Source: Lytechinus pictus
Lineage: Eukaryota
NCBI RefSeq assembly: GCF_037042905.1
Contig: NC_087262.1
Location: forward strand, 2,232,001-2,266,908
Direction of reading: 5' to 3'
Length of the DNA: 34,908 bases
Program-made: the position numbers and the translations under genes
Notes under the pieces: generated by a model
What the model was told of the DNA's origin: nothing
Seen by the model: only the letters and a program-made list of their open reading frames with translations
Database searches by the model: none
Part shown: piece by piece, positions 1,534 to 34,908 of the stretch
Layout: each line of letters starts with the position of its first letter
Position numbering within the stretch: position 1 is the stretch's first letter

Positions 1534-4500
1534 GTAAAACAAGCCCCTCCCGCAGGTCAAGCCCCTCCCATTTAGTCACTTGAAAGCGGGAGGAATAAAT
1601 ACTATACATTTTTCATTCATTGATAGAGTAAGGCTAAAATAGCTAAATGCTGGATTGTGCAGTATTATGTAAATGTTTAATTTGCAAAGACGAATGAATG
1701 AATATATTGCAATGTATAAACGCATTAATTTATTATTTAATGAATGAATGAATGTTCAAATGAAAAAGGGAATAAATGCAGCACGCATACATGGCATATA
1801 TGTATTAATTATGCGTGAATGACTGACGGACAGACTGAATGAATAAATGAACGAATGAATGAATGAATGAACGAACGAATGCATGAATGAGTGAGTGAGT
1901 GAGTGAGTGAGTGAGTGAGTGAATAAGCGAGTGAGTGAGTGGATGAGTGAGTAGATGAATGAATGAATGAACGAACGAATGAACGAACGAATGAATGAAT
2001 TAATTAATTAATCATCGAATGATGAAAAAGTGAATGAATGAATGAAAGAAAGAAAGAATGAATGAATGAATGAATAACTTAATAAAGAAGTAAATGATCC
2101 AATAATGTTTTCCTTCCTAGCATCATTCAGCACCAACCTCGTCAACGACACAACCGCCGACCTTCCGCTGTTCGACGAGGATGACGGTCTCGAACAAGAC
2201 AGTCATCCATCGGGGCATCGTGCGAAGCGACGAACTGGTCGGTACGCGGCAGGGAGACAGAACTACGTCGAGACAATGATCACTGTGGACGCTGCTATGC
2301 ATTCGTTTCATGGGGAGTCAGCAGTCAACATCTACGTCATTACAATGATTCATATCGTAAGATCATCTTCTTGAATTCATATTTTTTCAGAAAGCAGTAA
2401 GATTTTTTTGTATTTTTATCATTGTTTATTCCATTTATTTTAAAGCAAATTAAGTTCAATTGTTCACAAGGTACAATCATGGCCGAACGCAGATATTTTG
2501 GGGGTTTCATGACATTTACTCCGACGATAATTGCTCCGCTGCAAATTCTACACATTAATGGAATGACCGAGTTCAACCCTGGATTTAACACTATACCCTG
2601 TCCTAAACCTAACATATAACCCTATTGCAACCCTAACCCTATATCTTAGACGAAATCAAGCCCAGAGCAAATGTGTCACCATTTTTTTTCCTATGGAAGG
2701 CAAGGCAAGGCAAAGACATTTACATAATGGGAGATTATAACATTAATCTTATTAATACTGACAATAATTACACTCTAAAATTTATTAGCTCATTGCTTTC
2801 ATACTCTTTCCACCCGCATATTAGTAATCCGACACGAATATCAAGTACGTCTAAAACCCTCATTGACAATATCATTTCAAATGTAACTAACAAAAACTTC
2901 ATAAATGGCATAATTTATTCTGACATTTCGGACCATTTACCTATATTTGTTATTTCTAATCAAGCTAAAATTCAACAACATACAAATAAAAACAAAAAAG
3001 AAATGCGCAGAAAAGAAACCCAACGCAACATCGATGCACTAAAAACTGATTTAGCTGAAGAAGATTGGAATGAAGTATTGAACGAAACTAACGCCGATGT
3101 TGCTTATGAAATATTTATTCAAAAACTCTTACATTATTATAACAAAAACATACCTCTTGTAAAAGATAAGGTCCTTAAAAAGAATAAACAACCATGGATC
3201 ACAAAGGGCATTAAACGATCAATATCAACACGGAATAAACTCTATAAGCAAGCTCTAAAAACTCAATGTAAGGTAAAATTTGACAAATACAAAAAATATA
3301 GAAATAAATTGACATCCATTATTCGTCTATCTCGAAAACTGTACTATTCAAAAAATATAGAGGAAAACGCAAATAATGTTACTTTTTTATGGAAAACTGT
3401 CAACGATCTCTTAGGTAAGAAAAAACATGATATTGCAAATAGTTTTAATGTTGATGGTCAAGAAATTACTAACCCAGAAAAAATTTCAAATGCATTCAAT
3501 GATTATTTCACTAATGTAGGTCCCAATCTGGCCTTAAACATTCATGTAAATGATTCACATTTCACTAAATTCCTATCTCCAGCATGTGAAAACTCACTCT
3601 TTTTAAGACCAACTAATGAACTTGAAATAATTAGTATTGTTCAACAACTGAAATCTAGCAAGTCTTGTGGGCATGACGGAATTAGTGTTTATTTGCTTAA
3701 ACAAATTATTCATTACATTGCTCATCCACTATCCAATATATTTAATCTCTCTCTTTCAACAGGCAAATGCCCGGATTCCCTGAAACTCGCAAAAGTAATA
3801 CCAATTTATAAAAAAGAAGATTCCTCCTTAATCAGCAATTACAGGCCCATATCTTTACTACCATCAATATCTAAATTATTGAAAAAATTATTTATAAACG
3901 ACTCTTTACTTTTCTGAAAAACAATGATATTTTTATTCCTAATCAGTTCGGTTTTAGAGAAGGACACTCAACAGATTATGCCTTATTATATATGTACGAC
4001 AAAATTATTGAAGCTTTCACCAGAAAGGAACATTCGATTGGAATTTACATGGATCTTTCGAAAGCTTTCGATACAATCGACCACAAAATATTAATTCATA
4101 AATTAAAGTCATATGGAATAAGGGGACAAGCACTATCCTGGTTTGAAGACTATTTACATAATCGACAACAATACGTACATTTCCAATCTCAAAACTCACA
4201 AAAACAAAATATCAAGTGCGGCGTACCACAGGGATCAATTCTGGGACCCCTACTTTTTATTATCTATATTAATGATATCATAAATTCATCCCCAATTCTA
4301 AATTTCATAATTTTTGCCGACGATACCAGTATTTTCTATTCCCATTCTAATTTAGATACTCTAACTCATATTCTTAATTCAGAACTCTCTAAAATATCCC
4401 AATGGTTTAAAACAAACAAACTTTCACTTAACATAAGCAAAACCAATTTTATACACTTTCGAGAAGCTAATCCACACTTACCAGCTCCCAATTTATCAAT

Positions 4501-7500
4501 TGACGGTTTACCTCTTACTGAAAAGCACTCTACCAAATTCTTGGGAGTAACAATTGACTCCAATCTAACGTGGAATGAACACATACACAATGTACATACA
4601 TCTATATCAAGAAACATAGGAATAATTTACAAATTAAAAGACTTTCTTTCTGAAAAATCTGGAATTCCTTACCACAATACTTAAAACAATGTCCCTCTCT
4701 TAACTCATTCAAATCATCCTTTAAAACATTTATGACACGCAAATACAATTCTGAATAATTTATGCATATATATAAAAAGAGTTCTACGGGTCTTGGTCAA
4801 TTTTCAATTTTCTTGGTAAATTTTTAATTTCTATCTGATCTCATAAACTGTTACATCAGAAAATGAAAAAAGTTAAGTCATAGTATCAAACTTTGCTATC
4901 ATTTCAAGCTGTATCCTGGAACCATTCAATAATTCCTAATTAATACTACCCCACACCCTCATATACCGACACATATACACGCACGCCCACTCTCAACACA
5001 CACACACACTTATACATACACATACAATTTTAAATATACATTTGCACACGCGCACACGTTTGCACATGCACAAACACATGCAAATACGTCAAATGTGCAC
5101 ATAATATCAGGCATACAAGGTTCTTGCATGTAAATATCGTATTAATAATATCTGTTTATAATTATCAATCAATGCTTGATTTGTACTTCGTTCTTTTTTG
5201 TCTATTTCGCTAATACGTTTTGAGGCCGCTACCCTAGTCAAGCACTGCTTATGGTAGCGGTCTCCAGCATTTTTTTTTTCTACTCAACAAAGTACAACTT
5301 ATAATATTGCAAACTAATACTATCTATATACATTTTTGCAAATGAATGATTATTTGTATTTTTTTTTTGTAAAAAGAAATGTATCACTATTTTTTTCTTT
5401 ATGTTGTACATTATGTTTGTTAATTATTTCTGTTGGAAAAATGCTGAAATAAAATCAAATCAAAATCAAAGGCACATAAAGACAATGGCCCGTATTCTGA
5501 ACTCGGGTTTAAATTAAACCCTGGTTTAAAGTTGTGGTTTAACTATGGAGAGCCAGTTGGTGCACAAATCACTAACAGTACACATCCATTATATTAACTC
5601 ATTTGACACTCAAATTGTCTAAGAATGATAACTGAAGTATTCTGATGTATTTTTCTTCATTATGAAAGCAACATGGAACAAAATAGTAAGCATAGGAGAT
5701 TAAATTTTGGCTCCCCATAATTTTAGCTCATAGTTAGACCGTGGTCTAAGTTAAACCTGACTTCAGAATACGGGCCATAGGGGCGCTCTTGTATTATATA
5801 AAGTGAAATTGAAGAATTCGATGCACACTTGGTGAATTTCGTTACAATTTTCAGTAGAAAAAAAAAGTTTTCAAAATTTCGGGGGTGGGGGCAACAGGTA
5901 TACCAGGACCGTGTTTCATAAAATTGTTATTAAGATCATTGGTATAATGAGCCAAACATTATGAGGGGGAGGGGTCAGATATGGCGGATGGAGAAAAATT
6001 AATTATCGATTGTAGCCGTTTCGGAAATGATTATCAGCAATGCAACAGGTATCGGCTAGAAGCTAGATTGGATTTGTATCTTTCCCACTCTTCAGCTCCC
6101 GAAATCGTTTCCCGAAATATACATATAACAAAATGTTAACGTTTATATTTTATACATGACATAATCTTTTCGAAATTCACTCCTCCCGAAAACATGAGCA
6201 CGGGGTGCCCCAATTTATTTTACCACCCTTTTGAATATCACCTCGTTTTGTTAGTATTTCTTATAAAAGTGAAGTTATGTAATTGGAGAAGATACAAAAG
6301 AAATTGGAAACTGAATCTTTAATAAAGTATAAGATTTAAGAGGGAAAGAACTATGGAAATCAGACAAGTGTGTTTGAAATTACAATTTTTCAGGTCTGCA
6401 TAAATTTCGGCTCTGTCACGCTTCGTGCTCGCATTATTGACTCATGTTGTAAAAATGAAGCTAACCTGTAAGGAATACCCAACCCCAAAATAAAAACAAA
6501 TAAAAAAGAAGACACAAATAGCTGTGAGATCTTCGAGCAGCCACTTAACTCCCTCATCACAGAAAACAATGTTGTTTTAGTCACTCCCCCCCCCCCCCCC
6601 CACTCAACCAATAATACCGAATTCTAATCGACGCCCATGAATAATTAGGTATTTGAATCCCTGAGCCTTGCCAGGTGGTGCAATATCCTTTTTCCCCCTT
6701 TTTTAGAGGGGGGGGGGGAGAAGAAAAAGGGTCATCAAAATTGTCGGGGCGCTCTACCCCCCCCCCCCCGGTACAGGGAACGGAAGGGAAAGTTTATTCC
6801 CATACCTTGAAAACCCCACTTTTGTCACTGTAGGTAGGTTTAGATAATTTGCTTTTGTTTGCACAGGTATCTCCATACGAATTAATGTGCTTCTTTTACA
6901 ATTTCGAACTAATATTGAAAAATAAGAATTCGGTTAAAAGAAATGTTTGCGCAGAGCCCCACCCCGCTCTGCGCTGTGATGGACTACCATCGATTGAACG
7001 ATTGTTCCATCTCCAAATATTGTATTTTTCATAGTAAAACTGTGTCATCGTTTTTTTTTATTCGAAAGCTTAAATTTTATGATTTTTTTTTAATATCATT
7101 TAATTATTTTCATTTTGAAAGCATTGACCAGACGAGGGTGTTTGTTACTTTGTTGGTAATTTCTTGATGAATTTAGCCTTTATATTTTCATGATATTGCA
7201 TCAACAACAACAAAAATCGAAAATGAAAATGTGGGTTTACGTTCTTTGTTGCATATTAAACCAAAGTTAATTTCAGTGCCGAATACCACTGGCATTTGTT
7301 TTTGTAACTATGTCCGTGACAACCATTGAAAGATTTCAGTTTATTATGATTTCAGTTTATTATGATTTCAATATAAAAATTCAAAGACAAGCAAGAGAAA
7401 ATGAATAAGAAATATATACAAATACTTACCTAGACACTATATTAGAACCAGATGTTATGTTTTCACAATTAAAAAAAAAGTAATTTGAGGTCGAGTTAGT

Positions 7501-13500: not shown

Positions 13501-16500
13501 TAGGTTATAAAATGCGCATGGCTACTCCCTTTATTACGCAATAAAGTACAAATAATGACGTCACTGAATTATGCTAAGTATGGTGAGACTACCACATATC
13601 GACCACCTCTTTTGAAACCGACCACCTTGCGCGCGTTAAAATTATTGCGTATTACAAACGATACGCGCGGGAGAGTAGGCGCAGTGTCCATAGAAACGGA
13701 AAGAATCAATTTTACGAGATAAAAAGAAGCAACAAAAAGTAAAAATTTAGTAGAATTAATCAAAATTGTATTGACCAGACCCAAACCTCGCTGATTTTCT
13801 TGACTCATTGAATAATTTATTAAATCATCATTCTGTTCAAAACAAAAAGTGTATAATAATGGGAGATTTTAATTATGATCTTTTATCGAGTAATATTAAT
13901 ATTTCCACACATGAATTTTTAGAGACATTCCTCTCTGCTTCCTTCCTGCCACTCATTTCTAAACCCACTAGAATAACCAGAACTTCAGCAACTCTCATTG
14001 ACAACTTCTTTTCAAATATACAGTCAGAGTTTAATGCTGGAATTGTTCTGTCAGATATATCCGATCATTTTCCGATATTTATGCATTACACTGATAAATT
14101 TCAACCAAATAATACCCCCAGTGATTTTGCAAAAAGACGCGTGTTTAGTGACGAAAACATTGATCGTTTGAAGTTAAGCCTTGAGGAAGAAACTTGGCAT
14201 GATGTATTTAATAACGAAGATGTTAATCATTCGTATGATAAATTTATTGACATTTTCATGTCTCACGTAAATCGAAATATTCCTTATTCTACACATAAGT
14301 CTAAAAATTATAAGAAGTCGCCAAGACTTCCTTGGATTACGAATTCGATTCTGCGATCGATAAATCGAAAAAATAGGTTATACTATAAACACTTGTCTAA
14401 ATGTACTGATCAAACAAGGATTCAGTATACCAGTTATAAGAATGTACTTACAAGTGTCATCCGCACAGCAAAAAAGGTATATTATCATGACCAATTTAAT
14501 CGCTGTCAAAATGATCTAAGACGAACATGGAAGATAATAAATTCTACCCTTCACAATGGATCAAAGCATCCCAAGATTACTAAGCTTAGGCATAATAATG
14601 CTATAATTGAGAATACAATTCAAATGGCAAATATTTTTAACAATTATTTTTCCAATGTAGGTTTTAACCTCGCTAGCCATATACCATCAACAGATCACTC
14701 TTTTCATAATTATCTGACTGATAGAAACGAAAGTTCTTTATTTTTCTCTCCTACCTACCCACAAGAAATAATCAAAATCATATATGGGCTGAAATTGAAT
14801 AAGAGTGCAGGATTTGATGGAATCGATAACAACCTTCTGCAAAAAACTATGAATTATATTGTTCATCCTCTCGTTCATATATTCAATCTGTCTTTATCAT
14901 CTGGACATATTCCAGAATCAATGAAAATTTCGAAAATAATTCCGGTTTTCAAAAAGGGTGATAGAGAGCTAACAAATAATTATAGACCCATTTCATTGCT
15001 AACAACTTTGTCCAAAATCCTTGAAAAGTTGGTCCACATTCGTACAACAAATTTCTTTCATAAGCACAATATTCTTTCTAATACTCAATATGGCTTCCGA
15101 GAAAAGAGTAGCACTACTCATGCAATACTTTCTTTAGTTCAAAAGGTAGCTAAAGAAAGTGACCTGTCTTCTAATACGGTTGGTTTGTTCATAGATTTTT
15201 CTAAAGCATTTGATACTGTTGATCACGACATCCTTCTTTTCAAACTTTCTCATTACGGCATTCGGGGAAAACCATTGATATGGTTTAGGAATTATCTTAA
15301 AGGGCGCTCCCAGTTCGTTTCACTTAATGACAATTTCTCTGAACACAAGCCTGTCCTTTGCGGAGTTCCGCAGGGCAGTATTCTGGGTCCACTTTTGTTC
15401 ATAATTTATATAAATGACATTGAAAAGTCGTCTAGGTTACTTCAATTCATTCTTTTTGCTGATGATTCAAATATATTTTTCTCACATCATGATCCAAAAC
15501 AATTGACGCAAATGTTAAATAAAGAACTTAAAAACGTTGCAAATTGGATAAAAGCAAACAAATTATCACTAAACCTTGATAAAACTAGTTATATGCTGTT
15601 TAGTAATAAATTTGAAGCTTTACCAAATGATGTAATTTTTGATGGTACTGTCATCCAAAGGGTCCGATCAACTCGATTCCTTGGGCTAATCATAGATGAC
15701 AAGCTTTCCTGGAAACCGCACGTTGACAATGTCTGCAAAATCATTGCTCGAAATACTGGGATCCTTGGTAAATTAAAACAATTCTTACCACACACTATTA
15801 TGTTATCCTTGTATTCTACATTAATCCTCCCTTACTTAAATTATGGACTTATTGCTTGGGGTAATGCAACAATTTGGCTGATCGATAGACTATTTATATT
15901 GCAAAAAAGAGCTATTCGTGTAATAAATAATGCAGATTTCCGGGCACATACAAATAATCTATTCTTGAAAAATAAAATTCTGAAAATTAAAGAACTGTAC
16001 ACTTTTCAACTTGGACAGTTTATGTTCAAGCTTAATACTAAACAACTACCTATGCCTCTAATTGATATGTTTTTTAAAAATAGTTCGATTCATAGTCACT
16101 TCACACGCCAAGCAAACTCTTTTCATTTACCACTGAACAGAACATCATTTGCTCAAAAAACGTTTATTGTTATGGGTCCTAAGCTATGGAATTCTTTTAC
16201 AATTGATATAAAACAAAGCAATTCTATACAAATGTTCAAAAAACGACTTAAATCATTTCTCCTGAATTATTACTAAATATTTAATTCATCAATTACAAAT
16301 TAAGCCTTCAGTGCTAAGAAGGAAACCTTTAATAATTTGTATACACTATGAGTGATTCGTATATTTTTTAATATGATGCATATGATTTGTATAATAATGT
16401 ATATATTACATAATGTAAATATTGTTATTTGTTTGTTTGTTTGTTTGTTTGTTTTTACAAAAGAGCAATTCAGTTGCTATAAACACGTAATTACAACATT

Positions 16501-19500: not shown

Positions 19501-22500
19501 TATAAAAATGTTTCTATGTGCAAGTTCGAAGAAATCGAGGATTTTGGTTTCCTGCGCAAGTCATTCCACTATAATATTACGTGCCTTTTAATGTTATCTT
19601 TCACAGATGAGCGCTACACAAAATATGTCTGCATATATTACTATTATTTTAAATACAGTGAATTCTTCATAAGTCGACTTTCCATTTGTCGAATAATCGA
19701 CTTTTAAACTCAAAGCATCTGGCTGGCTGTCTCGTCAGTTGGCAACACAGCTAGGGTCGCCCCCTTTGAATCTATCCTGAACATACCGTGAATGTTATAA
19801 GAGGAAGGTCATGGTGTATGCTATGAGAAGATAATTACTCTCAAGACGATTTAATTACCCCCTCTCTCTAACACGATGTCATTCGCGTGTGGTGGTTTGC
19901 ATTCCCTGTTAAGGAACGTCTGGTTGACGATAAGAAGAGACGTTCAGAGATTGGTGGTAGGGGTAGTCATGGCAGTGGGGGTAGTGGTGGTGATGGGTTT
20001 GGCATACTGTGGCGTATCGTCCACTTCCAACAAATGAAAATCAATTGCATCACGCAATCAGCATAGGTTATTCCTTCTAGATATTCACCAAACATGTTAA
20101 GGGAGTGAATAATAAGAAAAGAATAGGCATAAACCACGGTCTTTTTATCTATAATTATATTATCTATCATTTTGATAGACTGTTTACTCGCTGTTGTTTA
20201 CAAAATCGAAAGGCGCCAGTTGTGCCATTTCATTGGGTCGACCGTACATAAGGTTTACCTTTCTTCTGTTCAAAGTAAACATTTTTTAACACTAGCGTAC
20301 AGATGGGGTGAAATGGGGCCATGGGCCGCCAAATCTTTCCACGACTAAGGAAAAAAAAAAGAAGTAAGGAAAAGAAAAGGGGTTAAATGTGATATTATTG
20401 TCTTAATATGATTTTTTTTTTTTTTTTTAAAGGTCAAAAATTTTGCTCGCTTGCTCCGTTCTCTCGCAGCTTTTTTTTTTTTGGAGGGAGGGGCGAATTT
20501 GCCTCAAACGCCATGTCTGGCCCCCACCACATTGTTGGCCCATTACGCTATACTGGTATTGTGTTAATGTTTATACTGTATTATAATGTTTGTTTTATGA
20601 TGAGAAGAATATAATAATTTGAACTGAATTGTAGTTTGACCTCAACGATCATCCTTACATGACAATTCGAGAAATATTTCGATTTGTTACCCTTTTATTT
20701 CTATTACTGTATTTTTCAGGTAAACACAGCTTATGATCACCCTTCATTGGAAGCTAACATTCAATTTGTCGTTGTTCGGATTGTACTACTGAACAGGCAG
20801 CAGGTGATTATCCCTTTCAAATACGAAGTGATTCTCCCATTTCTTTTCATAATTTGTGTAAAGTATAGAAAATTTTATTAAACGCAATATCCATTTTTAT
20901 ATTGATATTTAAAAGATCTATGCCCGGTCTTCAAATTCTTGTATTAAAACTGTGTGCATTTGGTAGATGGACAGAATAATATACTATCACATAACTGATT
21001 TCTGTAAATAAACATACAAAAGTATTGTTGGGCTTCTAATTCTAATATCAGAATACTATATTTACAATACTTTTATTGTATATAACATATTTTTCATTTA
21101 AACTTTAAAAGTAATGTAGTAGTATGTAATTATATTTTCCTTGAACATGCTGAAGATTAGGAAATCATTAGTTGTTGGGTAGTGATTATTGATGGTCAAT
21201 ATCATCATTCTTTTTACTTTCTTTCTCCAGTCGAAATACATGGTAGTAGAGAACAACGCTCCAGCCAGTTTGACCAATGTTTGTCGATGGGCAGCTACTC
21301 AGACCACACGTGATGACTCGGCCCCAGAGCATCACGACCATGCCATCTTTATCACCAAAGAAAACTTCGGACCAGCTGGTAGGTATCTTCCACCTCTCCT
21401 TGCTTTAGAAATAAACACAGTATTTCACAGTGTGTTCAAATTGTGTTCATAGTGCGGATTACAACGTGATATCTTCACACTGTAGAAAAGCTCAAATTTA
21501 ACATATTTCGGACTTTTCGCATTTACTACGGGGAAACTCTCTACAACGCACCATTTCCTTTGAAAATGCAAGCCAAATTACAATGGAAAGCTGAGAAGCT
21601 TTTGTCGAAAGTTGGTGGACCGGGGCAGCATCGGAATATCTTGACCATGGACAACGACATATTTGCAATTAACGTCCGGTGCAAGTCTTCGGATGATCTG
21701 CTGTCCCAGTCCACCAACTTTCGACGAAAGCCTCTCAGCTCTCCATTGTGGTTTTAATTGCATTTTTAAAGGAATCGATGCGTTGTAGAGAGTATCTCCG
21801 TAGTAAATGCGAAAACTTCCTGAGAGCACTCTCACGGTAACTGTGTTCCCAGTGTGAATATATCTTTACATTGTTGAAGTTATGCGTTTAAATCATTGTG
21901 GATCATATCTTCAGATACTCCACTACTTGAACATTCTGTGAACACACAGTGAAACAATGATATTTCTCAGCAGGGTTGGGTCCCTTATAAATAGTTGTAA
22001 CATGCAGGCGTATCATTATAGGTTTGACCATGACTTTACAGAGATGTGACTGTTTCATAAATGCATATAGTAGCTCGATAGCAGTTACTTTATCCATTTC
22101 ACATCTCATGACCAATTGAATTCATGACACAGAAACCAAGACCCCTTTTGTTGAGGGTTTCCAAAATTAAAACTGGCCAATTTATGCTATATTAATAGTT
22201 ACACCAATGAAACCGACCTCAATCGAATAGCTTTGACTTTCTTGAGTCGGTTTATGCCAATGCTACTGTGGCATCAAGAAGAGATGAAGTTCAAAACAAG
22301 TAACGAGTGTCGAATCAATGTTAATTTGAACTTTGAAGTTTGGCTCAATGACAGTCAGTTAGCTGCATGACAGTCTTTGTCAGTCAATCCGCATTATTGG
22401 TGGCAGCGGTGGGATGCTAGGAGTAATGATGAAACGAACTGTGATAACTTGGCAAATCTCAAATATTATTTAGCGTTTTTGTTAATATTTGTATTTACAA

Positions 22501-25500: not shown

Positions 25501-28500
25501 GTACATTTAAAATCCAGGTCCCACAGCAGGCGGATTTGTAAATAGAGAAAATCAAACGAGCATATTATGCTGTCAAGTCCGTCAGAGTCGTATGTAAAAT
25601 AAGAATGTTTTGACCTTTTAAAGTCTGCAGATGAGTGAGCCGATGATGAAGCACACACTTACTTTTTATTTTGTTATTATTATATGAAATATTATTGTAT
25701 GAAATATTTCAAACAATTTTGTTTTATATGACAATAAGAAAATTATTGATTGATTCATAATCCGTTACAACAATTGAAAATCCACATGTCCACAGTCATG
25801 GCAGTGGAATTAAAAACCATTTGGATTTGTGTGCATTTTAAAGAGGGAAAAATTAAATATTTCGTGTTATAAAGTGCAAGGAATGTGTGACATTGGGGTA
25901 AATCCGTGACGTCATACTGGGGGATAGAAAATAGATCACCCCCCTTGAACAAAATGTTCACTGCTCGGATTAATGCCAGTGGTTTGTGACGTCATCATTT
26001 CTCTTTTTATATAGCACCTGTGTTCTGCATAATTTTTTTTTTTTTTTAAAGGCCAAACTTTAAAAAGCCACAACGTTCTTTATTTCACACCCGACGTTTG
26101 CCGGAACTTTCAGCATCATACCTGTGTATTTTTTTTATTTTTCTCTCTCTCTATACATTCAAATTCGCATGTTCATAAAGTGGGCGTGACCTAAATAGAT
26201 TTTCAATTACCCAAAAGGGCTTCCACTGGGCAATGATATTAAGAAATTCTATGGAGCAAATTGCCCCTGAGATTTAGAAATATTCTTTATTTTACTCATG
26301 TAAACACCACTTTTGTGACTTACCACCATTTTCTGCCCTCCTCCAATCTCATCAAAAGTTTTGGCATGGAGCACGACGGCCAAGGAAACACGTGTGAAGA
26401 TGATGCGTCTCGAGGTTCCATCATGGCGCCCGTCGTTATATCGACCTACATTCACTACTTCTGGTCGAAGTGTAGTCGTATCGAGCTCAACCGATACCTA
26501 TCGTGAGTATCCGATACCTTTAACCCCCTTTCTCTCTTCCTTCCATTCCTCCGTCCGTCTTCTTCTGCTTCTAATCCATAGTTTCGGGATGGAACACGAC
26601 GGCGTCGGCAACACCTGTAAGCGCGACCAGTTACGGGGCTCTATCATGTCGCCGGTCGTCAAGGCCACTTACACCCGGTACTTCTGGTCGGTTTGCAGTC
26701 AGTACGAGCTTCACCGGTATCTCTCGTGAGTAGGTTCTGCTTTGTACATCCGGTTTGCCATATGGATTCGGTTTTACTTTCTTTCGGTTTTCTTGTCATC
26801 CGACTCACCCTCGCATCCGACTTATCCGTTCATCCGACTAGTTTCCTCTTTCAAATTTTATTTTCGTTTTGAGTTTTTCGTTATTTCATTTTCATTTGTG
26901 ATTTTGGAGCATGGTGCTTGGTTTAATGGTATTTTTTTATTTGATTGATCTAACTTGATTCCTAATCTGTTTATCGTTGATCGTTTGTTAGTGTTTGTAA
27001 CCTTGTATATTCGTCTACTTGTATTCAGTGTTGTTTTGTACAATTATATATTCAGTTAAATTTATAGACTCATTTTATCAACTCTTTAAGTGGTTGGTTC
27101 ATTGTTCATAATGTATTGGTTAGAGGAAGACCAAATCAATGGAAAGGTTTTCTGAAGAGCGAATGATTGGTCTGAACGAGGAACGCAATCTTTCGTAGGA
27201 GGGAAACTGACTGCTGTAGTCAGTTTATTGCAGCAATAAATGATGATGATGGAATATGAAAGGTTCTGTGTTAATATCATTTCTCATTCTTTCTTACTCC
27301 CAAGTTTACCTTGCGCTATATCGTTGTATGAAGCAGAAAGTTTTCATTAAACCATGAGGATGTATTATTGTGTGACTCACTTGTTTGTCAAACAAAGTTT
27401 AAGTTTTCTCAACCATTTCATCTCGTGTTCAGTTGGGAAATCATATTAATAAAATATTTACCATAATATTCATTGCGTGTTCTGATGATATTGGATCTTA
27501 CCTGTGGATCGAATTCTATCATTGCCATCCTCGTGTAGACCCTATGTTATCATGTGACTCGTTATTTGTGTTGTGTTGTATTTGGCCGATGTTTGTGTCT
27601 GGTTGTATTTGGTTTTGTTCGGGATTGCTTTCTTCTGACTTTAACAATTCTATGGGAGTGTGTATTTGAGTTTTGTCAGACGTGTATCAATCAGATATGA
27701 TTATTTACGTCTGGGACCGACCTTTAACGTCACCATCCGAAAGACGTGACCAGGGCTCGAACCTCGAACCTTATGCATCAATTTGTAACTTCCCCACATA
27801 GCTTGGATTACAGGCGCACGCCACAACGCCCAGGGAGTGTGCATGTATTGCAAATCAGTAGAACAGTATAACATTGTTTGACAGTTAACAGTATAGACCT
27901 ACATTGAAGGCATCCCTGCTGGAAACCTCAAAGTCACACAGTGTTTTCATCGTGTATTCAGTGTGTTCACACTCACAGTGCATTCATTGTATATTCAGTG
28001 TGTTCACAGCGTGTCCACAGTGTGTTCACCGTATATTCAGTGTTTTCACAGTGTTCATTGTATATTCAGTGTGTTCACTGTATATCCAGTGTGTCCACAG
28101 TGTGTTCACTGTATATTCAGTGTGTTCACAGTGTCTTCATTTATATTCAGTGTGTTCACAACGTGTTCACAGTGTGTTCACTGTATATTCCGTGTGTCCA
28201 CAGCGTGTTCACTGTATATTCAGTGTGTCCACAGTGTTTTCATTGTATATTCAGTGTGTTCACAGCGTGTCCACAGTGTGTTCATTGTATATTCAGTGTG
28301 TTCACAGCGTGTCCACAGTGTGTTCACTGTATATTCAATGTGTTCACAGCGTGTCCACAGTGTGTTCACTGTATATGCAATGTGTTCACAGCGTGTCCAC
28401 AGTGTGTTCACTGTATATTCAGTGTGTTCACAGCGTGTTCACAGTGGCCCGTATTCTAAAGTCGGGTTTAACTTAAACTCAGGATTAAGTATGGATAGCC

Positions 28501-31500
28501 AATTGTTACATAAATCAATAACAGTAGAGATATCATATTTCAGCTCATTTGGCTTTCAAATCATTCATAATTATATAAGAAGTGTAAATGGATGATTGTC
28601 TTCACCATCAATGAATCAGGAAAGAACACAATAAACATAAGAAACATAGAACTTAATAAAAATGTTGACACTTTTGGCTTCCCATAATTTTAGCACAGAG
28701 TTAGACCATGGTCTAAGTTAAACCTGTCTTCAGTGTGTATTCAGTGTGTTCACAGCGTGTCCACAGTGTGTTCACAGTGTATTCATAGTATATTCAGTGT
28801 GTTCACAGCGTATTCATTGTATTAACGGTCTTTTGACAGTGGGACACACAGTATATTCACATTGCGTTTAGTGTTTTTCATAGTGTTTTCAAACTGTGTT
28901 CACAGTGTGTTCATTATGTGTTCACAGTGTGTTCAAATTGTATTCACAGTGACTCCAAATAATGTTCACAGTGTTTTACAATGTGTGCACAGTGTGTCCA
29001 TGTGACGGACTAAATTTAAGTGTATGAATAATTTCACACTTTGGACACAGTGTGTACACATACAGGACTCTGAATATGAGATTTACAATGTTTGATTTTA
29101 GCATTGTAAAAAGAACAGTGTAAAAATGCATGGATTCGCATCATGTTCAACACTGTGAACACACTTTGTGATACACTGTGACACTATGAATTTTTCCACT
29201 AGGGATTAGGCCCGACAAATTTCGTCATTCGTTTTACTTCGTTTCACGGAATATAACAAATATTAATGCATGACAAACACTGGAAGAAATGGAGTTTTAT
29301 TGTACGAACAACATGAGAAATGATTAACATTCACCAGGAACATAACATAGTTATATTTACACTGATTTCCCCCAAATAATATGCATGGTCTGATTGTTGA
29401 AAAGCAAGAACATGAATTGCTGGAAAGTGAAATAATACTACTACTAATAATAACAATAATAATGATGATAATAATGATAATAAAAAACCACGAAGCATAT
29501 CACTTATTCATGAGGATTATATGTTTCCTGTTGTTTCTTTTCACCAATTAACAACATTGATAACATTTACTTTTCTGATAATTGTATAAGCACTTAGAGG
29601 AATCTGAATGTTGAAACGGTTATCCGTACTCACTTTAATTCCTTTTTCTAGTCGGTACTATTGCTTGTGGGATGATCCTTTCGATAGCGGATATCCGGAG
29701 GTCCGGCAGTATCCGGGTCGGCGCTATACAATGGATGAACAATGTCGGTTTGATTTCGGTCACGGCTACCGCACGTGTACCGCGGTAAGTGACAGTTTTT
29801 GGAGGTGAAACCTTTTCAGTGGCAGTTTTGATAATCGGGAATGTGATTTATTCAAATCCTAACAAGCAGAACAATTTCCTTCAGAATTTATATGGGAATA
29901 TACTGTACATGTATAAGTTTTAAGAACATGGATTTCCTTAATCAAAATGTGAGCAAGATTTTTGTTCAGAGTTCATTTGATACGTCTAAAGTTGTGCAAT
30001 TGATCCTTTAGGATTTTCGTAAGGAGAAAAAATTATTGTTACCTATATGCATAAAACTAAAGTTGTTGAGAATATCAATTATGCAGTCGAAGGAATAAAG
30101 ATTATGATATTTGAATAATTTTATGGCAGTCGTTTTAACAATGTTTTAACGTTTCTCAATTTGAATGAAATTCAACAGTTTTATTACAATCCATGTCAAG
30201 AGTTGTGGTGCATGCATCCGACCAGTTACAACTGCCGTACACGTAACGGACCACCACTGGATGGGACCGCCTGTGGTCCGGGCATGGTAAGGTGTAGCTT
30301 ATGGTCACTATACTGAAAGTTCCCCGTGGAATGAAACAAGGCTTATCTTCCGCTCACAAATATAGCTTTAAAAAAGATGTGATAAACTTTATGGCTCCAA
30401 ATATGATGCAGTCAGCTATGTAACTACTCATAGGTGAACATGGTAAAGAAAAGTTAAGGTTATGCTGTGAGCGGAACGTCAAACCCTTATTTCATTTATG
30501 GGCTTAATAATTGCCATTTACTAACCAACTTCTTCATCTTTCATTCTCGCTTTACCCAACCGGAAACAGTTCAATGATTACGACAAATGCGACCAACTGT
30601 GGTGTATGCACTACCGCAAAAGATATGTTTGTCGGACTAAGAAAGGTCCGCCGTTAGACGGCACAGAATGTGGTCCGGGAATGGTAAGAAAATGGTCGGA
30701 TTTCCCGCCTGTCGGATGACGATGTGGAATTTCTTAGGCTCGTGATACAGCAAAAAAAAAGCTCTTCAACATTTTGTTTTACGGGGGTGAATTCTTAGGG
30801 GGGTTTGGGTATCAGAAAATTAAAGAGGAGTTGAACACCTGTACCCCCCCCCTCTGCGTATGCTACTGTATAGGATTATGGGTTTGCTTTCATATTAGAG
30901 GGATTTAAACTAGATCAACACTGTTTCCAGAACATACGTCTTCTGAATACTGATGATGTCATTTTATGAAGATTCTGTATACGATAGTGGTTGGGCTAGT
31001 AGTTGGATTTAATTGTTTCAACCTTTATAATAAAATAGAAAAATATGAAAAATGCTAAAGAAAGATGGGCCAAAATTGTATTACAAAATTGAAAATGAGG
31101 ACGATATAATATATCAGAGTATTTCTTGGTCTACATAAATTGAACCAAGGGAAATCTCTCTTACATTAAGACGATTCCTATTAATGTTCATAAAGTATAT
31201 CGTTCCACCTTATAGAGAAAATGAACTTTATCTTTGTTATCGTTTTTTTGGTTTCTTGCTCATTTAAGTGACACATTGTATATATTAGAACCTTATGTAT
31301 TCATTATTTTAAGAAAGAGAACTTGGCGGGTTAAAATAGTTCCTGGATTCCACATTGTCTCTGATTGGTCGGGTTTCCCTATTGAATTCTGCACGAGAGC
31401 ACCTTGCATAGATCCTTGTGGTTTTGCACATTATCGGAGAAGTACTACATCAGGCAGACTGGAATGAAAATGCAAAATGTATATATTACATTCATTATTT

Positions 31501-34500
31501 ATACATGTCTCCGATTTGTTTAGATGAAACAGAGAAGAGGAAAAAAAGCATGAATATCATTTTGATTATTTCAATTTATGAATAGAGCTTGTAATGAAAT
31601 CGAAATTCCAAGTTGGTATGTTTGTGCATGAAGCTCGTGTCTCGTTTGATGAATTATGCATGAGTTGCATCTCGATATTTCTTGATTTCATATTGCAAAG
31701 AATTGCTGTAAGAGTTGGTCGTTTAAATTAAAATAATAAGCATTGCGTCTTTACCCAACAAAGAACACAAATTATAGCAGCGAATTCGTATGAACAATAC
31801 AAGGTTTTGGCCTAGTTTATCTTTCCTAATTCGGTTTTCTGATGCGCAAACTGACGCTGATTGGGTTAAATTATTAACCAATCGCGTTTGTCATTTCACC
31901 GTGATCCTCATGTCGGTTTGGGAACTAGGTATTTGATGTGTTCGTAATTTCTTTGTCACGATTGCTGTTGCGAATGAACTGTATACATTTCCATTCTTAC
32001 TAATGTATATAACCTTAAAATAAGCAATATTTCGACGATGGATTATTTTGAATTGTACTGTTTACAATCTAAAATGGATTAATTTAAATATTACTATATT
32101 TTCAAACTTTGTTCATCTGCTTTTATAGTAGTCTAGTTCCTTTGTTTGTTTTCTATTCAAATATGGTAGACCTGAATAATTATGTGTGTTTATTTTTTTA
32201 AACAATTTTTTACGTTCATTTTCTTTATGTTTGCATCTTTTCTTGCGTTTCTGCTTATTTGACTGTGTGTGATTTTTTTTTATTGTTCTCATGTTTGGTT
32301 TATTCTATATATTTGTTTATTTTGTTTCAGGCAAAAAATAAACAGGTATAATAACACTATGATAACATATATATAATAAGAATAACATGTATGAGAAGAA
32401 TGATTTTGATGATAATGATGAGGATAATAATAATGATAATAAACTGTGGAGCGTTGTGGCCCAGTGTATTAGTCTTCTGACTTTGAAACAGAGGGTTGTG
32501 GGTTCGAATCCCAGCCATGGCGTAATTTGCTTCATCAAGAAATTCGTCCACATTGTGCTGCACTCAACCCAGGTGAGGTGAATGGGTACCTGGCAGGAAT
32601 TTATTCCTTGAAATGCGTGTGCGCTGTAATCTTAGTAATTACGGCTGCCAAGTTACAGCTGGGGTAATAATATCCAAGTCCTTTGGAAGTGCATAGAGAC
32701 ATTATTCATAATGTGATATGCGCTATACAAGAACTGTATATTATTATTATTATTATTATTATCATTATTAATGATAATGATAGAATAATGAAAATACCAC
32801 CAGCCAGTGATCCGGAATAGCCAAAAGGGTTGTTCTTATTGAAACTTTCTCTCTTATTTGTCGCTGGTTTACAAACATAGTAATAATAAATAAATAAAAC
32901 TTGAAATGGAACAAATTCATTTTGATTCATGACAAGAGCAAATAATAGCTTGTAAATCAATAGGAATCAGCTCAAAGTGTAACCATTATCATGGACTTAT
33001 TCTGACTATCACGATTTCAATATATTGAAATGATTTATTGTTGAAGAAAACCAAGCGTTGAAATTCTCTCGAAAATGCTGGCCGGTAATGAAAATAAATA
33101 ATTCTTACGACATTTTAAGTCGAATTCGTGAGGAATGTTGAGCTAAAAACTAATCTTTGAAGATTCCTACCGGAAGGTTGAGAATATGATAGAATCCTTA
33201 AAAAAAAAAAATATTGCTTCATTTTCAAATCCGTTGCTTTTTTTTTCGAGGGACAAAGTTGCATGAGCCTGGTTTCTGTAGGGTCATGCAATAATCATAC
33301 CGGATTCCTTTAGAAATAATATTCACACATCATTCTGAACAGGTGGTTAATCGATCGGTATCGGTTAATTGTTAGGCTCGCAGATAATTTTTCTTCCCTG
33401 GATTTGAAAAATGAATAATATGCTACTTAAAAAGAAACCAAATTATCACAAATTTAGAAATCTTCTCTGTGGTGGCATAAAGAAATGTGGGATGAATAAC
33501 CCCCCCCCCCCTTCCCTGTACATCCAAAGTTTTTCTTCTTCGCTCCTGCACCCGAACATCTTCTTTGTCCTCTATTTTCCGGCCCTAATTTGAAAAAAAA
33601 TGGCAACACATGATCTGATAAAATCCAAGTATGTCAAACTGCATGTTGGTGAAGCACATAAAATTTGTTCCCATTTTAAACCAAAAAACTTCTTCTTTTA
33701 ACTCCTGTCTGAACAGTGGTGCGTTCAAGGAACTTGTAGGTATTCACAGAATCAGATCGATGGTCATTGGAGCGCGTGGACTGGATGGTCAGAATGTTCA
33801 TATTCGTGTGGTACAGGTACTAAGTACAGGACAAGACAATGCGATAACCCAAGGTAAACGATCATGATTGATTGATTGATCGGTTGGTTGATTGGTTGAA
33901 TGAATGATCAAGTAACTGATTGATTGATTATTTGATTGATTGATTCATTGATTGATTGAATGGCTTGATTGAAAGCTTGAATACTCATTGATTGATTGAT
34001 TGATTGATTGACTAACTTAATAGATAGACTAATTGTTGGTCGATGTGTTGATAGGTTGGTTGGTTGAATGAATGATCAAGTAACTGATTGATTGATTGAT
34101 TGATTAATTGATTGATTGATTGATTGATTCGATGATTTATGGATTAATTAATTGATTGAATGAATGTTTAATTGATTGAGTGAGTAAAATGCTAATTTAT
34201 TGATTAATTGGTAAATTGGTTTACTGACTGTTCAATGGATAAATCAATTGGCTGATTTGTCAATTTTTATCAGATTGATTCTTTGATTTTCCCCATTTAG
34301 ACCCCAATACGGAGGACGGGAGTGCTCAGGTAAAGGCGAGGATGTTAGACTTTGCAATACTCAGGTGTGTAAAGCAACCTTTCTGTTTCATTGCATTTTT
34401 TAGCCACTGCCAATTAGTTTATCTGATGATATGATGACAAACGGTATATATCCATAATACAAAGATGATTGTGAATGGTATGATTATATCTGTTTGAAAT

Positions 34501-34875
34501 AAAAATTATCTCATTAATTAGGTAATTTTATAATATTTTAGAACCATCTACATGCATCTTACATTCAAAGCGGCTTTAAACAAATAATGTTATTGAGATT
34601 TACTCTTGAAAAATATATAATGTATCCTTTTGTACATTTACTATTATATTTGTTGTGTGTTTATCGATTATCTCTGCCGAAATTACAAAATCGTGTGACC
34701 TGTTGTTATTATAGAGAATAACTATAGATCCACGATTGAATTTGATTTCCTTTTTGCTACCAGGAATGTCCAAATGGACCCATTGACAAGCGCGCAGAGC
34801 AGTGTACTAACTTTTTCAGCAATTGGAACTTTATGAATCAGAGACATACCTGGCTGCCATATGAAAACAGAAATA
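1377..34875 (+). CDS. ADAMTS3: ADAMTS2/3/14-like (procollagen N-proteinase family) metalloprotease gene, partial and multi-exon; 5' and 3' ends lie outside the window
   Basis: Phase-compatible GT-AG exons join into: pro-domain (EYIIEP..HVMYRR), furin site RAKR, catalytic domain ([37 protein letters not shown](A/S)P), disintegrin-like ([21 protein letters not shown]), TSP1 ([25 protein letters not shown]) and Cys-rich start (RAEQC..WLPYE). [18 protein letters not shown] and GPPLDGT match the vertebrate ADAMTS2/3/14 subfamily. The symbol is a family-level call. Confidence 0.95.
1738..2075. repeat. (GAAT)n/(GAGT)n/(GAAC)n compound microsatellite
   Basis: Direct inspection. Confidence 0.95.
2121..2356 (+). 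CDS. ADAMTS3: ADAMTS exon B, furin site RAKR and start of the metalloprotease domain ([26 protein letters not shown])
   Basis: cctag acceptor, atc|gtaaga donor; phase 1 to phase 0. Confidence 0.92.
2505..2680. mobile_element. Small element with gacatttactcc/gagcaaatgt ends and internal CCCTAA-like repeats
   Basis: Imperfect terminal inverted match; cctaaacctaac and ccctaacccta inside. Confidence 0.4.
2710..5470 (+). mobile_element. 5'-truncated, disrupted non-LTR retrotransposon (CR1/L2 group): ORF2 APE-RT remnant, 3' UTR and (ATCAA)n tail
   Basis: IMGDYN, PTR..TLIDNI, SDHLP (APE); [29 protein letters not shown] (RT). 1-nt frameshift near 3880; roughly 0.4-kb internal deletion at 4654-4660 judged against the second LINE; stop at 4758; AATAAA followed by an atcaa tail at 5448-5470. 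Confidence 0.93.
5487..5776. mobile_element. MITE with GGCCCGTATTCTGAA TIRs and AT flanks (Harbinger/ISL2EU-like)
   Basis: at|ggcccgtattctgaa ... ttcagaatacgggcc|at; second copy at 28446-28733. Confidence 0.85.
7845..8060 (-). CDS. Kinase last exon: APE, subdomains IX-XI and stop
   Basis: [38 protein letters not shown]; ctacag acceptor, TAG stop. Confidence 0.9.
   Translation of the reverse strand, partial: ENFVHLAPECALDDEATSTMSDVYQLGRVLKSMGDEADIAELNSIGVMCMQTPPTSRPTIEDVVDLLECMM
8236..8449 (-). CDS. Kinase exon: catalytic loop and DFG
   Basis: [30 protein letters not shown]; tttcag acceptor, AAT|GTAAGT donor. Confidence 0.9.
8807..9003 (-). pseudogene. Kinase exon covering alphaC to hinge, carrying the premature TGA
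   Basis: [65 protein letters not shown]; gacag acceptor, GTGAGT donor. Confidence 0.85.
9243..9474 (-). CDS. Kinase exon: Gly-rich loop and VAIK-equivalent lysine
   Basis: [27 protein letters not shown]; tgcag acceptor, CAG|GTAAGC donor. Confidence 0.88.
10661..10879. mobile_element. MITE with CACT...AGTG termini and TA flanks, copy 2 (inside a kinase-gene intron)
   Basis: ta|cactctaaattccaaggattt ... aaatcctcgaaatttagagtg|ta. Confidence 0.8.
11019..11261 (-). CDS. Kinase-gene exon encoding a predicted coiled coil
   Basis: [49 protein letters not shown]; catag acceptor, CAG|GTAAAG donor, 243 nt, phase 0-0. Confidence 0.75.
11386..11542. mobile_element. MITE family with GGGAGCGTTTCAT TIRs and 3-bp CWG TSD (PIF/Harbinger-like), copy 1
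   Basis: cag|gggggcgtttcat ... atgaaacgctccc|cag. Confidence 0.85.
13410..13575. promoter_or_regulatory. Cluster of bZIP-type sites upstream of the kinase gene
   Basis: TTATGCAA 13417-13424, TGCGCATG 13513-13520, TTACGCAA 13534-13541, TGACGTCA 13556-13563; locally CpG-rich. Confidence 0.4.
13775..16733 (+). mobile_element. 5'-truncated non-LTR retrotransposon (CR1/L2 group) with an uninterrupted ORF2 remnant, 3' UTR, (ATTGA)n and poly(A)
   Basis: Open frame from 13775 to 16276 with APE C-terminal half and full RT motifs; tail aataaaatgattgaattgaattgaattg followed by a poly(A) run. Confidence 0.95.
13808..16276 (+). CDS. LINE ORF2 (endonuclease-reverse transcriptase), N-terminally truncated
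   Basis: 822-aa ORF with [45 protein letters not shown] and FLG; no authentic start codon. Confidence 0.9.
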   Translation: MNNLLNHHSVQNKKCIIMGDFNYDLLSSNINISTHEFLETFLSASFLPLISKPTRITRTSATLIDNFFSNIQSEFNAGIVLSDISDHFPIFMHYTDKFQPNNTPSDFAKRRVFSDENIDRLKLSLEEETWHDVFNNEDVNHSYDKFIDIFMSHVNRNIPYSTHKSKNYKKSPRLPWITNSILRSINRKNRLYYKHLSKCTDQTRIQYTSYKNVLTSVIRTAKKVYYHDQFNRCQNDLRRTWKIINSTLHNGSKHPKITKLRHNNAIIENTIQMANIFNNYFSNVGFNLASHIPSTDHSFHNYLTDRNESSLFFSPTYPQEIIKIIYGLKLNKSAGFDGIDNNLLQKTMNYIVHPLVHIFNLSLSSGHIPESMKISKIIPVFKKGDRELTNNYRPISLLTTLSKILEKLVHIRTTNFFHKHNILSNTQYGFREKSSTTHAILSLVQKVAKESDLSSNTVGLFIDFSKAFDTVDHDILLFKLSHYGIRGKPLIWFRNYLKGRSQFVSLNDNFSEHKPVLCGVPQGSILGPLLFIIYINDIEKSSRLLQFILFADDSNIFFSHHDPKQLTQMLNKELKNVANWIKANKLSLNLDKTSYMLFSNKFEALPNDVIFDGTVIQRVRSTRFLGLIIDDKLSWKPHVDNVCKIIARNTGILGKLKQFLPHTIMLSLYSTLILPYLNYGLIAWGNATIWLIDRLFILQKRAIRVINNADFRAHTNNLFLKNKILKIKELYTFQLGQFMFKLNTKQLPMPLIDMFFKNSSIHSHFTRQANSFHLPLNRTSFAQKTFIVMGPKLWNSFTIDIKQSNSIQMFKKRLKSFLLNYY
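18444..18545. repeat. Minisatellite, 3 copies of 33-36 bp
   Basis: ggtcgttaaaggagcagtacgacttttcggtga and two variants. Confidence 0.8.
18876..19162. mobile_element. Two adjacent, oppositely oriented copies of the GGGAGCGTTTCAT MITE (18876-19021 and 19025-19162)
   Basis: Both carry the family TIRs and the internal tccgacaagttgtcagatctgac block; separated by ctg. Confidence 0.82.
20720..20803 (+). CDS. ADAMTS3: ADAMTS exon C ([28 protein letters not shown])
   Basis: tttttcag acceptor, cag|gtgatt donor, 84 nt; continues the catalytic domain after an 18.4-kb intron. Confidence 0.92.
21231..21378 (+). CDS. ADAMTS3: ADAMTS exon D ([37 protein letters not shown])
   Basis: ctccag acceptor, g|gtaggt donor, 148 nt. 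Confidence 0.93.
21510..21820. mobile_element. Palindromic (foldback) MITE
   Basis: Arms ttttcgcatttactacggggaaactctctacaacgca...tcgaaagttggtggac and gtccaccaactttcga...tgcgttgtagagagtatctccgtagtaaatgcgaaaa. Confidence 0.8.
22544..22699. mobile_element. GGGAGCGTTTCAT MITE, copy 4
   Basis: ctg|gggagcgtttcat ... atgaaacgctccc|ctg. Confidence 0.88.
23421..24239. mobile_element. Tc1/mariner-type non-autonomous element with TIRs of about 300 bp, in a (TA)n context
   Basis: ta|cagtgcgtcccagaaaaaacgaaaccgagatt ... aatctcggtttcgttttttgtgggacgcactc|ta; complementarity extends about 300 bp inward. Confidence 0.9.
24564..24669 (+). CDS. ADAMTS3: ADAMTS exon E, containing the HExxH zinc motif ([36 protein letters not shown])
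   Basis: ctacag acceptor, gt|gtaagc donor, 106 nt, phase 1 to phase 2. Not in the supplied ORF track. Confidence 0.95.
25508..26197. mobile_element. Decayed non-autonomous DNA element, possibly TTAA/Kolobok-type
   Basis: Degenerate ends ttaaaatccaggtcccac / gtgggcgtgacctaaat, with internal gtgacgtcat pairs. Confidence 0.35.
26359..26502 (+). CDS. ADAMTS3: ADAMTS exon F1, alternative copy 1: third Zn ligand and Met-turn ([48 protein letters not shown])
   Basis: aaag acceptor, tc|gtgagt donor, 144 nt, phase 2-2. Confidence 0.9.
26582..26725 (+). CDS. ADAMTS3: ADAMTS exon F2, alternative copy 2 ([48 protein letters not shown])
   Basis: catag acceptor after a long pyrimidine tract, tc|gtgagt donor, 144 nt, phase 2-2; paralogous to F1. 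Confidence 0.9.
27561..27834 (-). mobile_element. SINE with 7SL(Alu-domain)-like head, B-box, Deu/Nin-like core and CAA-rich tail
   Basis: Minus strand reads CTGGGCGTTGTGGCGTGCGCCTGTAATCCAAGCTA...GGTTCGAGCCC..GTCTTTCGGATGGTGACGTTAAAGGTCGGTCCC. Confidence 0.7.
27935..28445. repeat. Minisatellite of 9-11-bp subunits in a higher-order unit of about 42 bp
   Basis: Repeating cactgtatatt-cagtgtgtt-cacagcgtgtc-cacagtgtgtt; resumes after 28733. Confidence 0.9.
28446..28733. mobile_element. GGCCCGTATTCT MITE, copy 2, nested in the minisatellite, right TIR truncated
   Basis: Similar to 5487-5776 along its length; ends at aaacctgtcttcag. Confidence 0.8.
29652..29784 (+). CDS. ADAMTS3: ADAMTS exon G ([44 protein letters not shown])
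   Basis: ttctag acceptor, gcg|gtaagt donor, 133 nt, phase 2 to phase 0. Confidence 0.94.
30179..30286 (+). CDS. ADAMTS3: ADAMTS exon H1, alternative copy 1, disintegrin-like ([36 protein letters not shown])
   Basis: caacag acceptor, atg|gtaagg donor, 108 nt, phase 0-0. Not in the ORF track. Confidence 0.88.
30570..30683 (+). CDS. ADAMTS3: ADAMTS exon H2, alternative copy 2 ([38 protein letters not shown])
   Basis: TACTAAC branch point at 30519-30525, aaacag acceptor, atg|gtaaga donor, 114 nt, phase 0-0; paralogous to H1. Confidence 0.9.
32448..32770 (+). mobile_element. tRNA-derived SINE with (TTA)n tail
   Basis: A-box TGGCCCAGTG and B-box GGTTCGAATCCC; core cactcaacccaggtg..aatgggtacc; 3' gcgctatacaagaact followed by (tta)n. 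Confidence 0.85.
33717..33853 (+). CDS. ADAMTS3: ADAMTS exon I, TSP1 repeat ([45 protein letters not shown])
   Basis: gaacag acceptor, ag|gtaaac donor, 137 nt; WxxWxxWxxC motif. Confidence 0.94.
33866..34280. repeat. (ATTG)n microsatellite with an internal duplication
   Basis: ttggttgaatgaatgatcaagtaactgattgattg occurs twice (near 33892 and near 34060). Confidence 0.92.
34301..34364 (+). CDS. ADAMTS3: ADAMTS exon J, end of TSP1 ([21 protein letters not shown])
   Basis: atttag acceptor, cag|gtgtgt donor, 64 nt. Confidence 0.9.
34764..34875 (+). CDS. ADAMTS3: ADAMTS exon K, start of the Cys-rich domain ([37 protein letters not shown])
   Basis: taccag acceptor, a|gtaagt donor, 112 nt. Confidence 0.92.
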
Positions 34876-34908
34876 GTAAGTGATAATAGGAGGACGAAGA
34901 GTAGTACT

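Follow-up and report, generated by a model that had tools for sequence, protein, structure and literature searches.

Classical mutually exclusive tandem exons, such as those of tropomyosin and FGFR2 (IIIb/IIIc), are adjacent homologues of near-equal length and the same phase, of which one is used per transcript; they are ancient and under purifying selection, with the scaffold kept and surface residues swapped (surveys PMC5740500, PMC9741552, PMC9013439). No ADAMTS case was found in the main text of these surveys. In ADAMTS13, exosite 1 is made up of the V-loop (residues 324-330) and the hypervariable region, to which Arg349 and Leu350 belong; Arg349 lies 26 Å from the zinc and contacts Asp1614 of VWF (PMC6706451, PMC4885070). 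Here we describe a pair of duplicated exons, H1 and H2, in the disintegrin-like domain of an ADAMTS gene of the sea urchin Lytechinus pictus, part of which is borne on the + strand of a stretch of 34,908 nucleotides (nt) (assembly GCF_037042905.1, contig NC_087262.1, positions 2,232,001 to 2,266,908), called the window below. H1 and H2 are very probably mutually exclusive alternatives, descended through an old tandem duplication from a single phase 0-0 exon of 38 codons, in a gene of the ADAMTS2/3/14-like type. Full-text searches of the literature returned no description of exclusive exons in an ADAMTS disintegrin-like domain or of the splicing of this urchin gene.

The pair and the exons on its two sides are arranged as follows:

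Exon G, 29652-29784, + strand: constitutive; closes the catalytic domain and opens the disintegrin-like domain (PF17771 positions 1-25)
Exon H1, 30179-30286, + strand: 108 nt, 36 amino acids; neutral V-loop and hypervariable loop; ...caacag before, gtaagg after
H1-H2 intron, 30287-30569, + strand: 283 nt; GTAAGG donor; TACTAAC branch-point-like site at 30519-30525
Exon H2, 30570-30683, + strand: 114 nt, 38 amino acids; acidic V-loop and basic hypervariable loop; ...aaacag before, gtaaga after
Exon I, 33717-33853, + strand: constitutive; PF00090; acceptor for both H exons

Exon G is entered in phase 2 and left in phase 0, its final codon being complete at 29784, and its gtaagt donor serves both H exons. 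Exon I opens on a complete codon at 33717 and encodes the final two cysteines of the disintegrin-like domain, after which the central thrombospondin repeat begins. Because G ends and I begins on full codons, H1 and H2 are both phase 0-0. The lengths of 108 and 114 nt and the phases given in the first-pass annotation were exact, both exons being flanked by AG and GT at the expected coordinates. The placement of the pair in the disintegrin-like domain was likewise borne out, since both exons match PF17771 (ADAMTS_CR_2) at profile positions 28-61 (E ~1e-8) and align to the same residues of the ADAMTS-4, -5, and -1 crystal chains. Identity between the H1 and H2 peptides is 67% (24 invariant columns), and a tblastn search of the window with one H peptide found only the other (E 3e-13) and no third copy. 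At 17 of the 24 shared residues the codons differ, suggesting that the duplication is old and that the likeness has been held at the protein level. On this sequence evidence, the likeness of H1 and H2 is that of an old duplication kept by protein-level selection, and a chance match or a recent copy is rejected.

Transcript evidence for the choice between the two exons was obtained over positions 29500-33900 from three Logan contig sets (runs X1, X2, and X6) and one raw-read run (X21). The joints G-H1 (29783->30178, GT..AG) and H1-I (30285->33716) were found in all four runs. In X21, 4 raw reads cross G-H1 and 8 cross H1-I, and long contigs in X1 (2.0 kb) and X6 (3.0 kb) run straight from G through H1 to I. 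The joints G-H2 (29783->30569) and H2-I (30682->33716) were found in X2, where a 169-nt contig of depth 5.62 runs from 28 nt of G through the whole of H2 (114 nt) and into 27 nt of I. A matching 163-nt H1 contig stands beside it at depth 4.03, so that H2 is about as abundant as H1 in this run. Such paired contigs are the bubble expected for two exclusive paths. In addition, the k-mer share was about 0.17 in most runs, which is one exon's worth, and a few runs fitted two exons, X2 among them at 0.35; the share of 0.41 in X1 was raised by an unspliced intron piece (30387-30550). Neither an H1-H2 nor a G-I joint was present among the joints listed for the four runs, all at low depth. These results indicate that H1 and H2 are both expressed, each alone, and that H1 is the commoner in the samples seen, being the major form in three of the four runs. 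The first-pass annotation had staked its proposal on two outcomes not occurring, namely expression of one H exon only and constitutive inclusion of both; what the RNA contains is both G-H1-I and G-H2-I.

The exon pair is well conserved among sea urchins. The tandem arrangement of H1 and H2, their order, and their AG/GTAAG sites recur in L. variegatus (L003), in a third urchin (L004), and in Diadema setosum (L001). Conservation in related genomes, which had been put forward earlier as a check, thus extends as far as Diadema for both exons together with their splice sites. H1 differs from its L004 counterpart by 11 nucleotide changes and 0 amino-acid changes, its protein being identical in L. 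variegatus and L004, and from that of Diadema by 21 nucleotide changes and 2 amino-acid changes (34/36 identical). For H2, 6 nucleotide changes and 1 amino-acid change were counted against L004, and 30 nucleotide changes and 9 amino-acid changes against Diadema (nonsynonymous divergence, dN, 0.17; synonymous divergence, dS, 2.6; dN/dS ~0.07). The dN/dS ratios are far below 1 for both copies against both L004 and Diadema, and by these comparisons both H copies are under strong purifying selection, with their splice sites retained. Judged from the same alignments, the H pair predates the split between Diadema and Lytechinus. This split is estimated at roughly 200-250 million years ago.

What the choice of exon changes in the protein can be read from the alignment to ADAMTS13 (6QIG), in which the H exon covers Cys332-Cys360, including Arg349 and Leu350, plus most of the preceding V-loop. 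All four cysteines and the motifs LWCMH, CRT, GPPLDGT, and CGPGM form an invariant scaffold shared by H1 and H2. Of the 14 columns at which the two differ, 11 are in the V-loop and hypervariable region (Fisher one-sided p 0.009). The V-loop reads YYNP in H1 and NDYDK in H2, the hypervariable loop PTSYN in H1 and YRKRYV in H2, and the residues after the next cysteine RN in H1 and KK in H2. H2 had been called the more basic exon, and the direction is right: lysine plus arginine (K+R) against aspartate plus glutamate (D+E) count 7/5 in H2 (net charge +2) and 2/2 in H1 (net 0), the basic residues of H2 being clustered in the hypervariable loop. The loop residues of H1 are identical in Diadema, and the H2 loops keep their basic character there, with YRKRYV replaced by PRKKYL and TKK by SKK. 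H2 also keeps the motif TKKGPP, which is common to ADAMTS2/3/14-type proteins and present in nearly all relatives.

By homology, the best reading of these differences is a spliced exosite swap. As to the earlier claim that this domain serves as a substrate exosite, the location stands, the variable residues sitting at the equivalents of ADAMTS13 exosite 1, and the function is carried over by homology only. In the mRNA, G is joined to H1 or to H2 and then to I, and with either exon the reading frame is kept, as are the four cysteines in this half of the domain. The swap would leave the scaffold in place and replace the V-loop and the hypervariable loop, the elements that in ADAMTS13 make up exosite 1 beside the active-site cleft. 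The resulting isoforms would differ in the substrate or matrix partner that is held in register with the catalytic site, and the H pair, together with a second duplicated pair in the catalytic domain, would yield several protease specificities from one gene. The second pair is as follows:

Exon F1, 26359-26502, + strand: 144 nt; first of the two copies; codes for the third zinc-binding His and on through the Met-turn
Exon F2, 26582-26725, + strand: 144 nt; second copy, 79 nt downstream of F1

The K+R/D+E counts are 6/4 in F2 and 4/6 in F1, in agreement with the earlier description of F2 as the more basic member. The F and H choices are combined in automatic gene models of the sister species: in L. 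variegatus, RefSeq isoform X1 (XP_041485782) carries F1+H2, isoform X2 (XP_041485783) F2+H2, and isoform X3 (XP_041485784) F2+H1. These three proteins differ in the F exon, the H exon, or both, and in nothing else, and their H peptides are identical to those of the window. The L. pictus model is F2+H2, and the Diadema model joins its single F exon to H2. Up to four isoforms had been predicted, which is reasonable given that three of the four combinations are modelled in L. variegatus. The proposed coordination of F1 with H1 and of F2 with H2 is not supported, since two of the three modelled combinations are mixed and Diadema has the H pair with one F exon. The F1/F2 pair is present in both Lytechinus species, and Diadema has a single F1-like exon (L001:34731-34868). 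The occurrence of the H pair with a single F exon in Diadema suggests that the two switches arose at different times and that the F pair is the younger. A search with P0269:470-650 found no transcript-derived protein fragments phasing F with H.

The H pair is already annotated in a sister species, in the form of automatic RefSeq models that carry either the H1 or the H2 version, and it is an ordinary kind of alternative splicing. Models of the brittle star Amphiura filiformis (XP_072051170/1) hold an analogous H pair. The models of both species are predictions that carry no description. Of the two H versions, the Diadema RefSeq protein XP_072165296 has H2 only; a spliceable H1 orthologue lies at L001:36699-36806, 396 nt upstream, and was left out of the model.

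Several points weigh against the proposal of mutually exclusive exons that swap an exosite. The RNA depth is low, and a minor fraction of transcripts with both exons or with neither, each of which would be in frame, is compatible with the data. H2 was found in only one of the four runs, and all 12 raw junction reads are of H1. There are six weakly supported joints beyond those listed, and the runs are known by code only, so that the use of H2 is tied to no tissue or stage. Of the known devices that enforce exclusivity (steric block, U2/U12 incompatibility, frame shift followed by decay, and competing RNA pairing), none is evident for the urchin pair, no search for docking and selector sequences having been made in the long flanking introns. 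In addition, the exosite role is assigned by homology to ADAMTS13, and no solved structure of the ADAMTS2/3/14 group was among the search matches.

Some of the RNA results would fit an explanation in which one exon, most plausibly H2, is decaying or unused, and the transcripts and models that contain it are splicing noise or an annotation artefact: X1, X6, and X21 contain H1 only, and most runs hold about one exon's k-mers. However, in four urchin genomes the AG/GTAAG sites of H2 are intact and its frame is open, its dN/dS against Diadema is ~0.07, it has the TKKGPP motif of nearly all relatives, and in X2 it is as abundant as H1 and cleanly joined to both G and I. The explanation fails for H1 too, which is the main form in the RNA and matches its Diadema counterpart at 34/36 residues, and we regard a dead copy as very unlikely. 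It is also quite improbable that H1 and H2 are independent cassette exons, with both or neither included at meaningful levels. Since both lengths are multiples of three, such transcripts would keep the reading frame and not be removed by nonsense-mediated decay. An intron of 283 nt can be spliced, the analysis found no competing RNA structure that is conserved, and the read depth is low. Against this, both exclusive paths are present, with no direct passage from H1 to H2 or from G to I among the joints listed, and none of 149 protein matches has two such segments (P0115 and P0145 were scored with two stretches and on reading have one motif each). Moreover, inclusion of both exons would duplicate, and omission of both would delete, four disulfide cysteines of a compact domain, and a product with four such cysteines too many or too few would probably misfold. 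A further possibility, if not a likely one, accepts that the pair is exclusive and takes the RKR/KK cluster of H2 for a patch that anchors the protease to glycosaminoglycans or matrix, or for an inhibitor or cofactor site, so that the isoforms would differ in localisation or regulation and not in cleavage specificity. The hypervariable loop of H2 does concentrate lysine and arginine (7 in H2 against 2 in H1), and its basic character is kept in Diadema while the residues change. Conservation of charge rather than of identity is typical of polyanion-binding patches. However, the same segments form a substrate exosite in ADAMTS13, the one relative examined with mutational data on these loops, and the loop residues of H1 are conserved in identity and not in charge alone. 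The exosite and anchoring readings are not exclusive of each other, and both may hold.

With regard to how mutually exclusive use of H1 and H2 would be enforced, the H1-H2 intron is 283-396 nt long in the urchins, which leaves no steric block, and the splice sites of both exons are U2-type GT-AG, both donors being GTAAG and both acceptors AG. No intron sequence is conserved beyond the bases next to the splice sites. Exclusivity is likely to result from regulated splice-site choice combined with the removal of misfolded products that contain both exons or neither. A long imperfect inverted repeat occupies most of the H1-H2 intron (about 30323-30500; minimum free energy -66.8 kcal/mol, z -2.4 against shuffles). 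It was considered as a conserved looping device and rejected: the arms occur only in the two Lytechinus species and are absent from L004 and Diadema, and the hairpin folds modestly better than shuffles. An insertion specific to this lineage is a likelier account of the repeat than a role in splicing.

Which exon is duplicated varies among the echinoderm classes. The sea cucumber (L005) and the feather star (L006) have a single H exon, whereas Amphiura (L002) has two H copies of its own (57579-57868), which are used in RefSeq isoforms X2 and X1. The Amphiura copies stand in the reverse order to those of the urchins, the TKK-type copy coming first, with a 59-nt intron between them; this spacing would allow steric mutual exclusion and makes the pair a candidate for it. 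A tree of the H exons of echinoderms and outgroups, built on 38 columns, was unresolved and had no starred branch, only the urchin H1 copies grouping together (92/89), and it therefore cannot tell whether the Amphiura and urchin pairs are orthologous. The opposite order and the differing exon ends suggest that the two pairs originated independently. Two further observations were made in the Amphiura locus: further pieces of the second copy occur at 58254-58298 and 58501-58557, and fragments of exon I recur many times over at 61148-62292, either as a genuine tandem array or through an artefact of assembly. In the sea cucumber (GCA_037975245.1), where the H and F exons are both single, a different tandem pair was observed at L005:34550-35181 (34550-34699 and 35005-35181, ~30% protein identity). 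It is used alternatively by RefSeq isoforms X2 and X1, and its counterpart is the catalytic-domain exon at 21186-21449 of the window. Tentatively, echinoderms may diversify a single ADAMTS2/3/14-type protease by repeated, independent tandem exon duplications instead of by gene duplication, the H switch being a natural swap of exosites through which a single catalytic core would be directed at different matrix substrates, in parallel with the split into ADAMTS2, 3, and 14 in vertebrates.

The assignment of the gene to this group comes from protein searches. A profile of H1 and H2 run against 1.8 billion representative proteins led to a full-length protein of Diadema setosum (P0002), and a follow-up protein search led to proteins of L. 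variegatus and Amphiura filiformis labelled ADAMTS 3-like. Over the F-I region the closest non-echinoderm matches are ADAMTS14, 3, and 2, at 52-55% identity (E ~1e-85). Going by these best hits, the gene appears to be a sea urchin ADAMTS2/3/14-like gene of the procollagen-N-proteinase type, and cleavage of fibrillar-procollagen N-propeptides is its putative activity, from kinship with the subgroup. The locus DNA is about 90% identical to its L. variegatus counterpart, and the F2 peptide of the window is that of the L. pictus protein XP_063969476. The catalytic domain is of the reprolysin type (PF01421), the F exons bearing GMEHD followed by SIMAP or SIMSP at the Met-turn. The zinc-binding signature tested was HExxHxxGxxHD plus Met-turn (M12B, reprolysin type), and the full zinc motif, HESGHVFGMEHD, is found in those proteins of L. 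variegatus and L. pictus that agree with the window exons in their F, G, H, and I segments. The domain order is that of ADAMTS proteins, with PF17771 (G, H1, and H2) directly after the catalytic domain and then the central thrombospondin type 1 repeat PF00090 in exon I. In addition, the region matches the crystal chains of ADAMTS-5, -1, -4, and -13 (E 1e-12 to 1e-9). The window stops within the cysteine-rich region at 34880, and the full-length orthologues bear the spacer PF05986 in precomputed Pfam lists.

The window is AT-rich animal DNA, with retrotransposon open reading frames (ORFs) inside long introns. Two long ORFs of the reverse-transcriptase type, resembling retrotransposons without long terminal repeats, lie in introns of the ADAMTS gene at 2637-4681 and 13775-16273. 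The F-G intron contains a long minisatellite-like tandem repeat at 27889-29000, which is open in three frames as a Cys/Ser/Val-rich repeat. The H2-I intron contains an interspersed repeat at 32440-32733, whose summed word depth in RNA contigs exceeds 100,000; raw reads match it by the thousand on both strands, and it shows many variant letters and loose ends. Transfer RNA and Rfam scans of 29500-33900, which includes this repeat, gave no match.

The H pair would offer a natural experiment on ADAMTS specificity, as only the V-loop and the hypervariable loop change between the isoforms, and catalytic core and scaffold are the same in both. The exosites of the ADAMTS2/3/14 group are poorly defined, and an isoform pair older than the Lytechinus-Diadema split points to residues that matter. 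A pair of this kind, with no obvious mechanism of exclusivity, is also a test case for splicing control in a non-vertebrate deuterostome. For genome annotation, it illustrates that single-isoform models miss conserved coding exons, as the omission of H1 from the Diadema model does. Its main appeal lies in the natural exosite swap that it would represent, and in the duplication of different exons of the same gene in different echinoderm classes.

Taken together, H1 and H2 resemble the classical mutually exclusive tandem exons in adjacency, length, phase, use, age, and pattern of change, and differ from them in having no evident classical enforcing device. The resemblance to ADAMTS13 lies in the position of the H1/H2 differences, which map to its L1D and L2D loops and residues 350-351. 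However, ADAMTS13 belongs to another ADAMTS subfamily, and its exosite is fixed, whereas that of the urchin protein would come in two spliced versions. The vertebrate ADAMTS2/3/14 proteins have the same domain order, a 38-codon exon with the same boundaries (cag/F...GK/gt in the genomic ORFs), and one motif in common with H2. In the vertebrate proteins and genomic ORFs retrieved, three paralogous genes have one version of the segment each, whereas in the urchins one gene has two H exons and, in Lytechinus, also two F exons.

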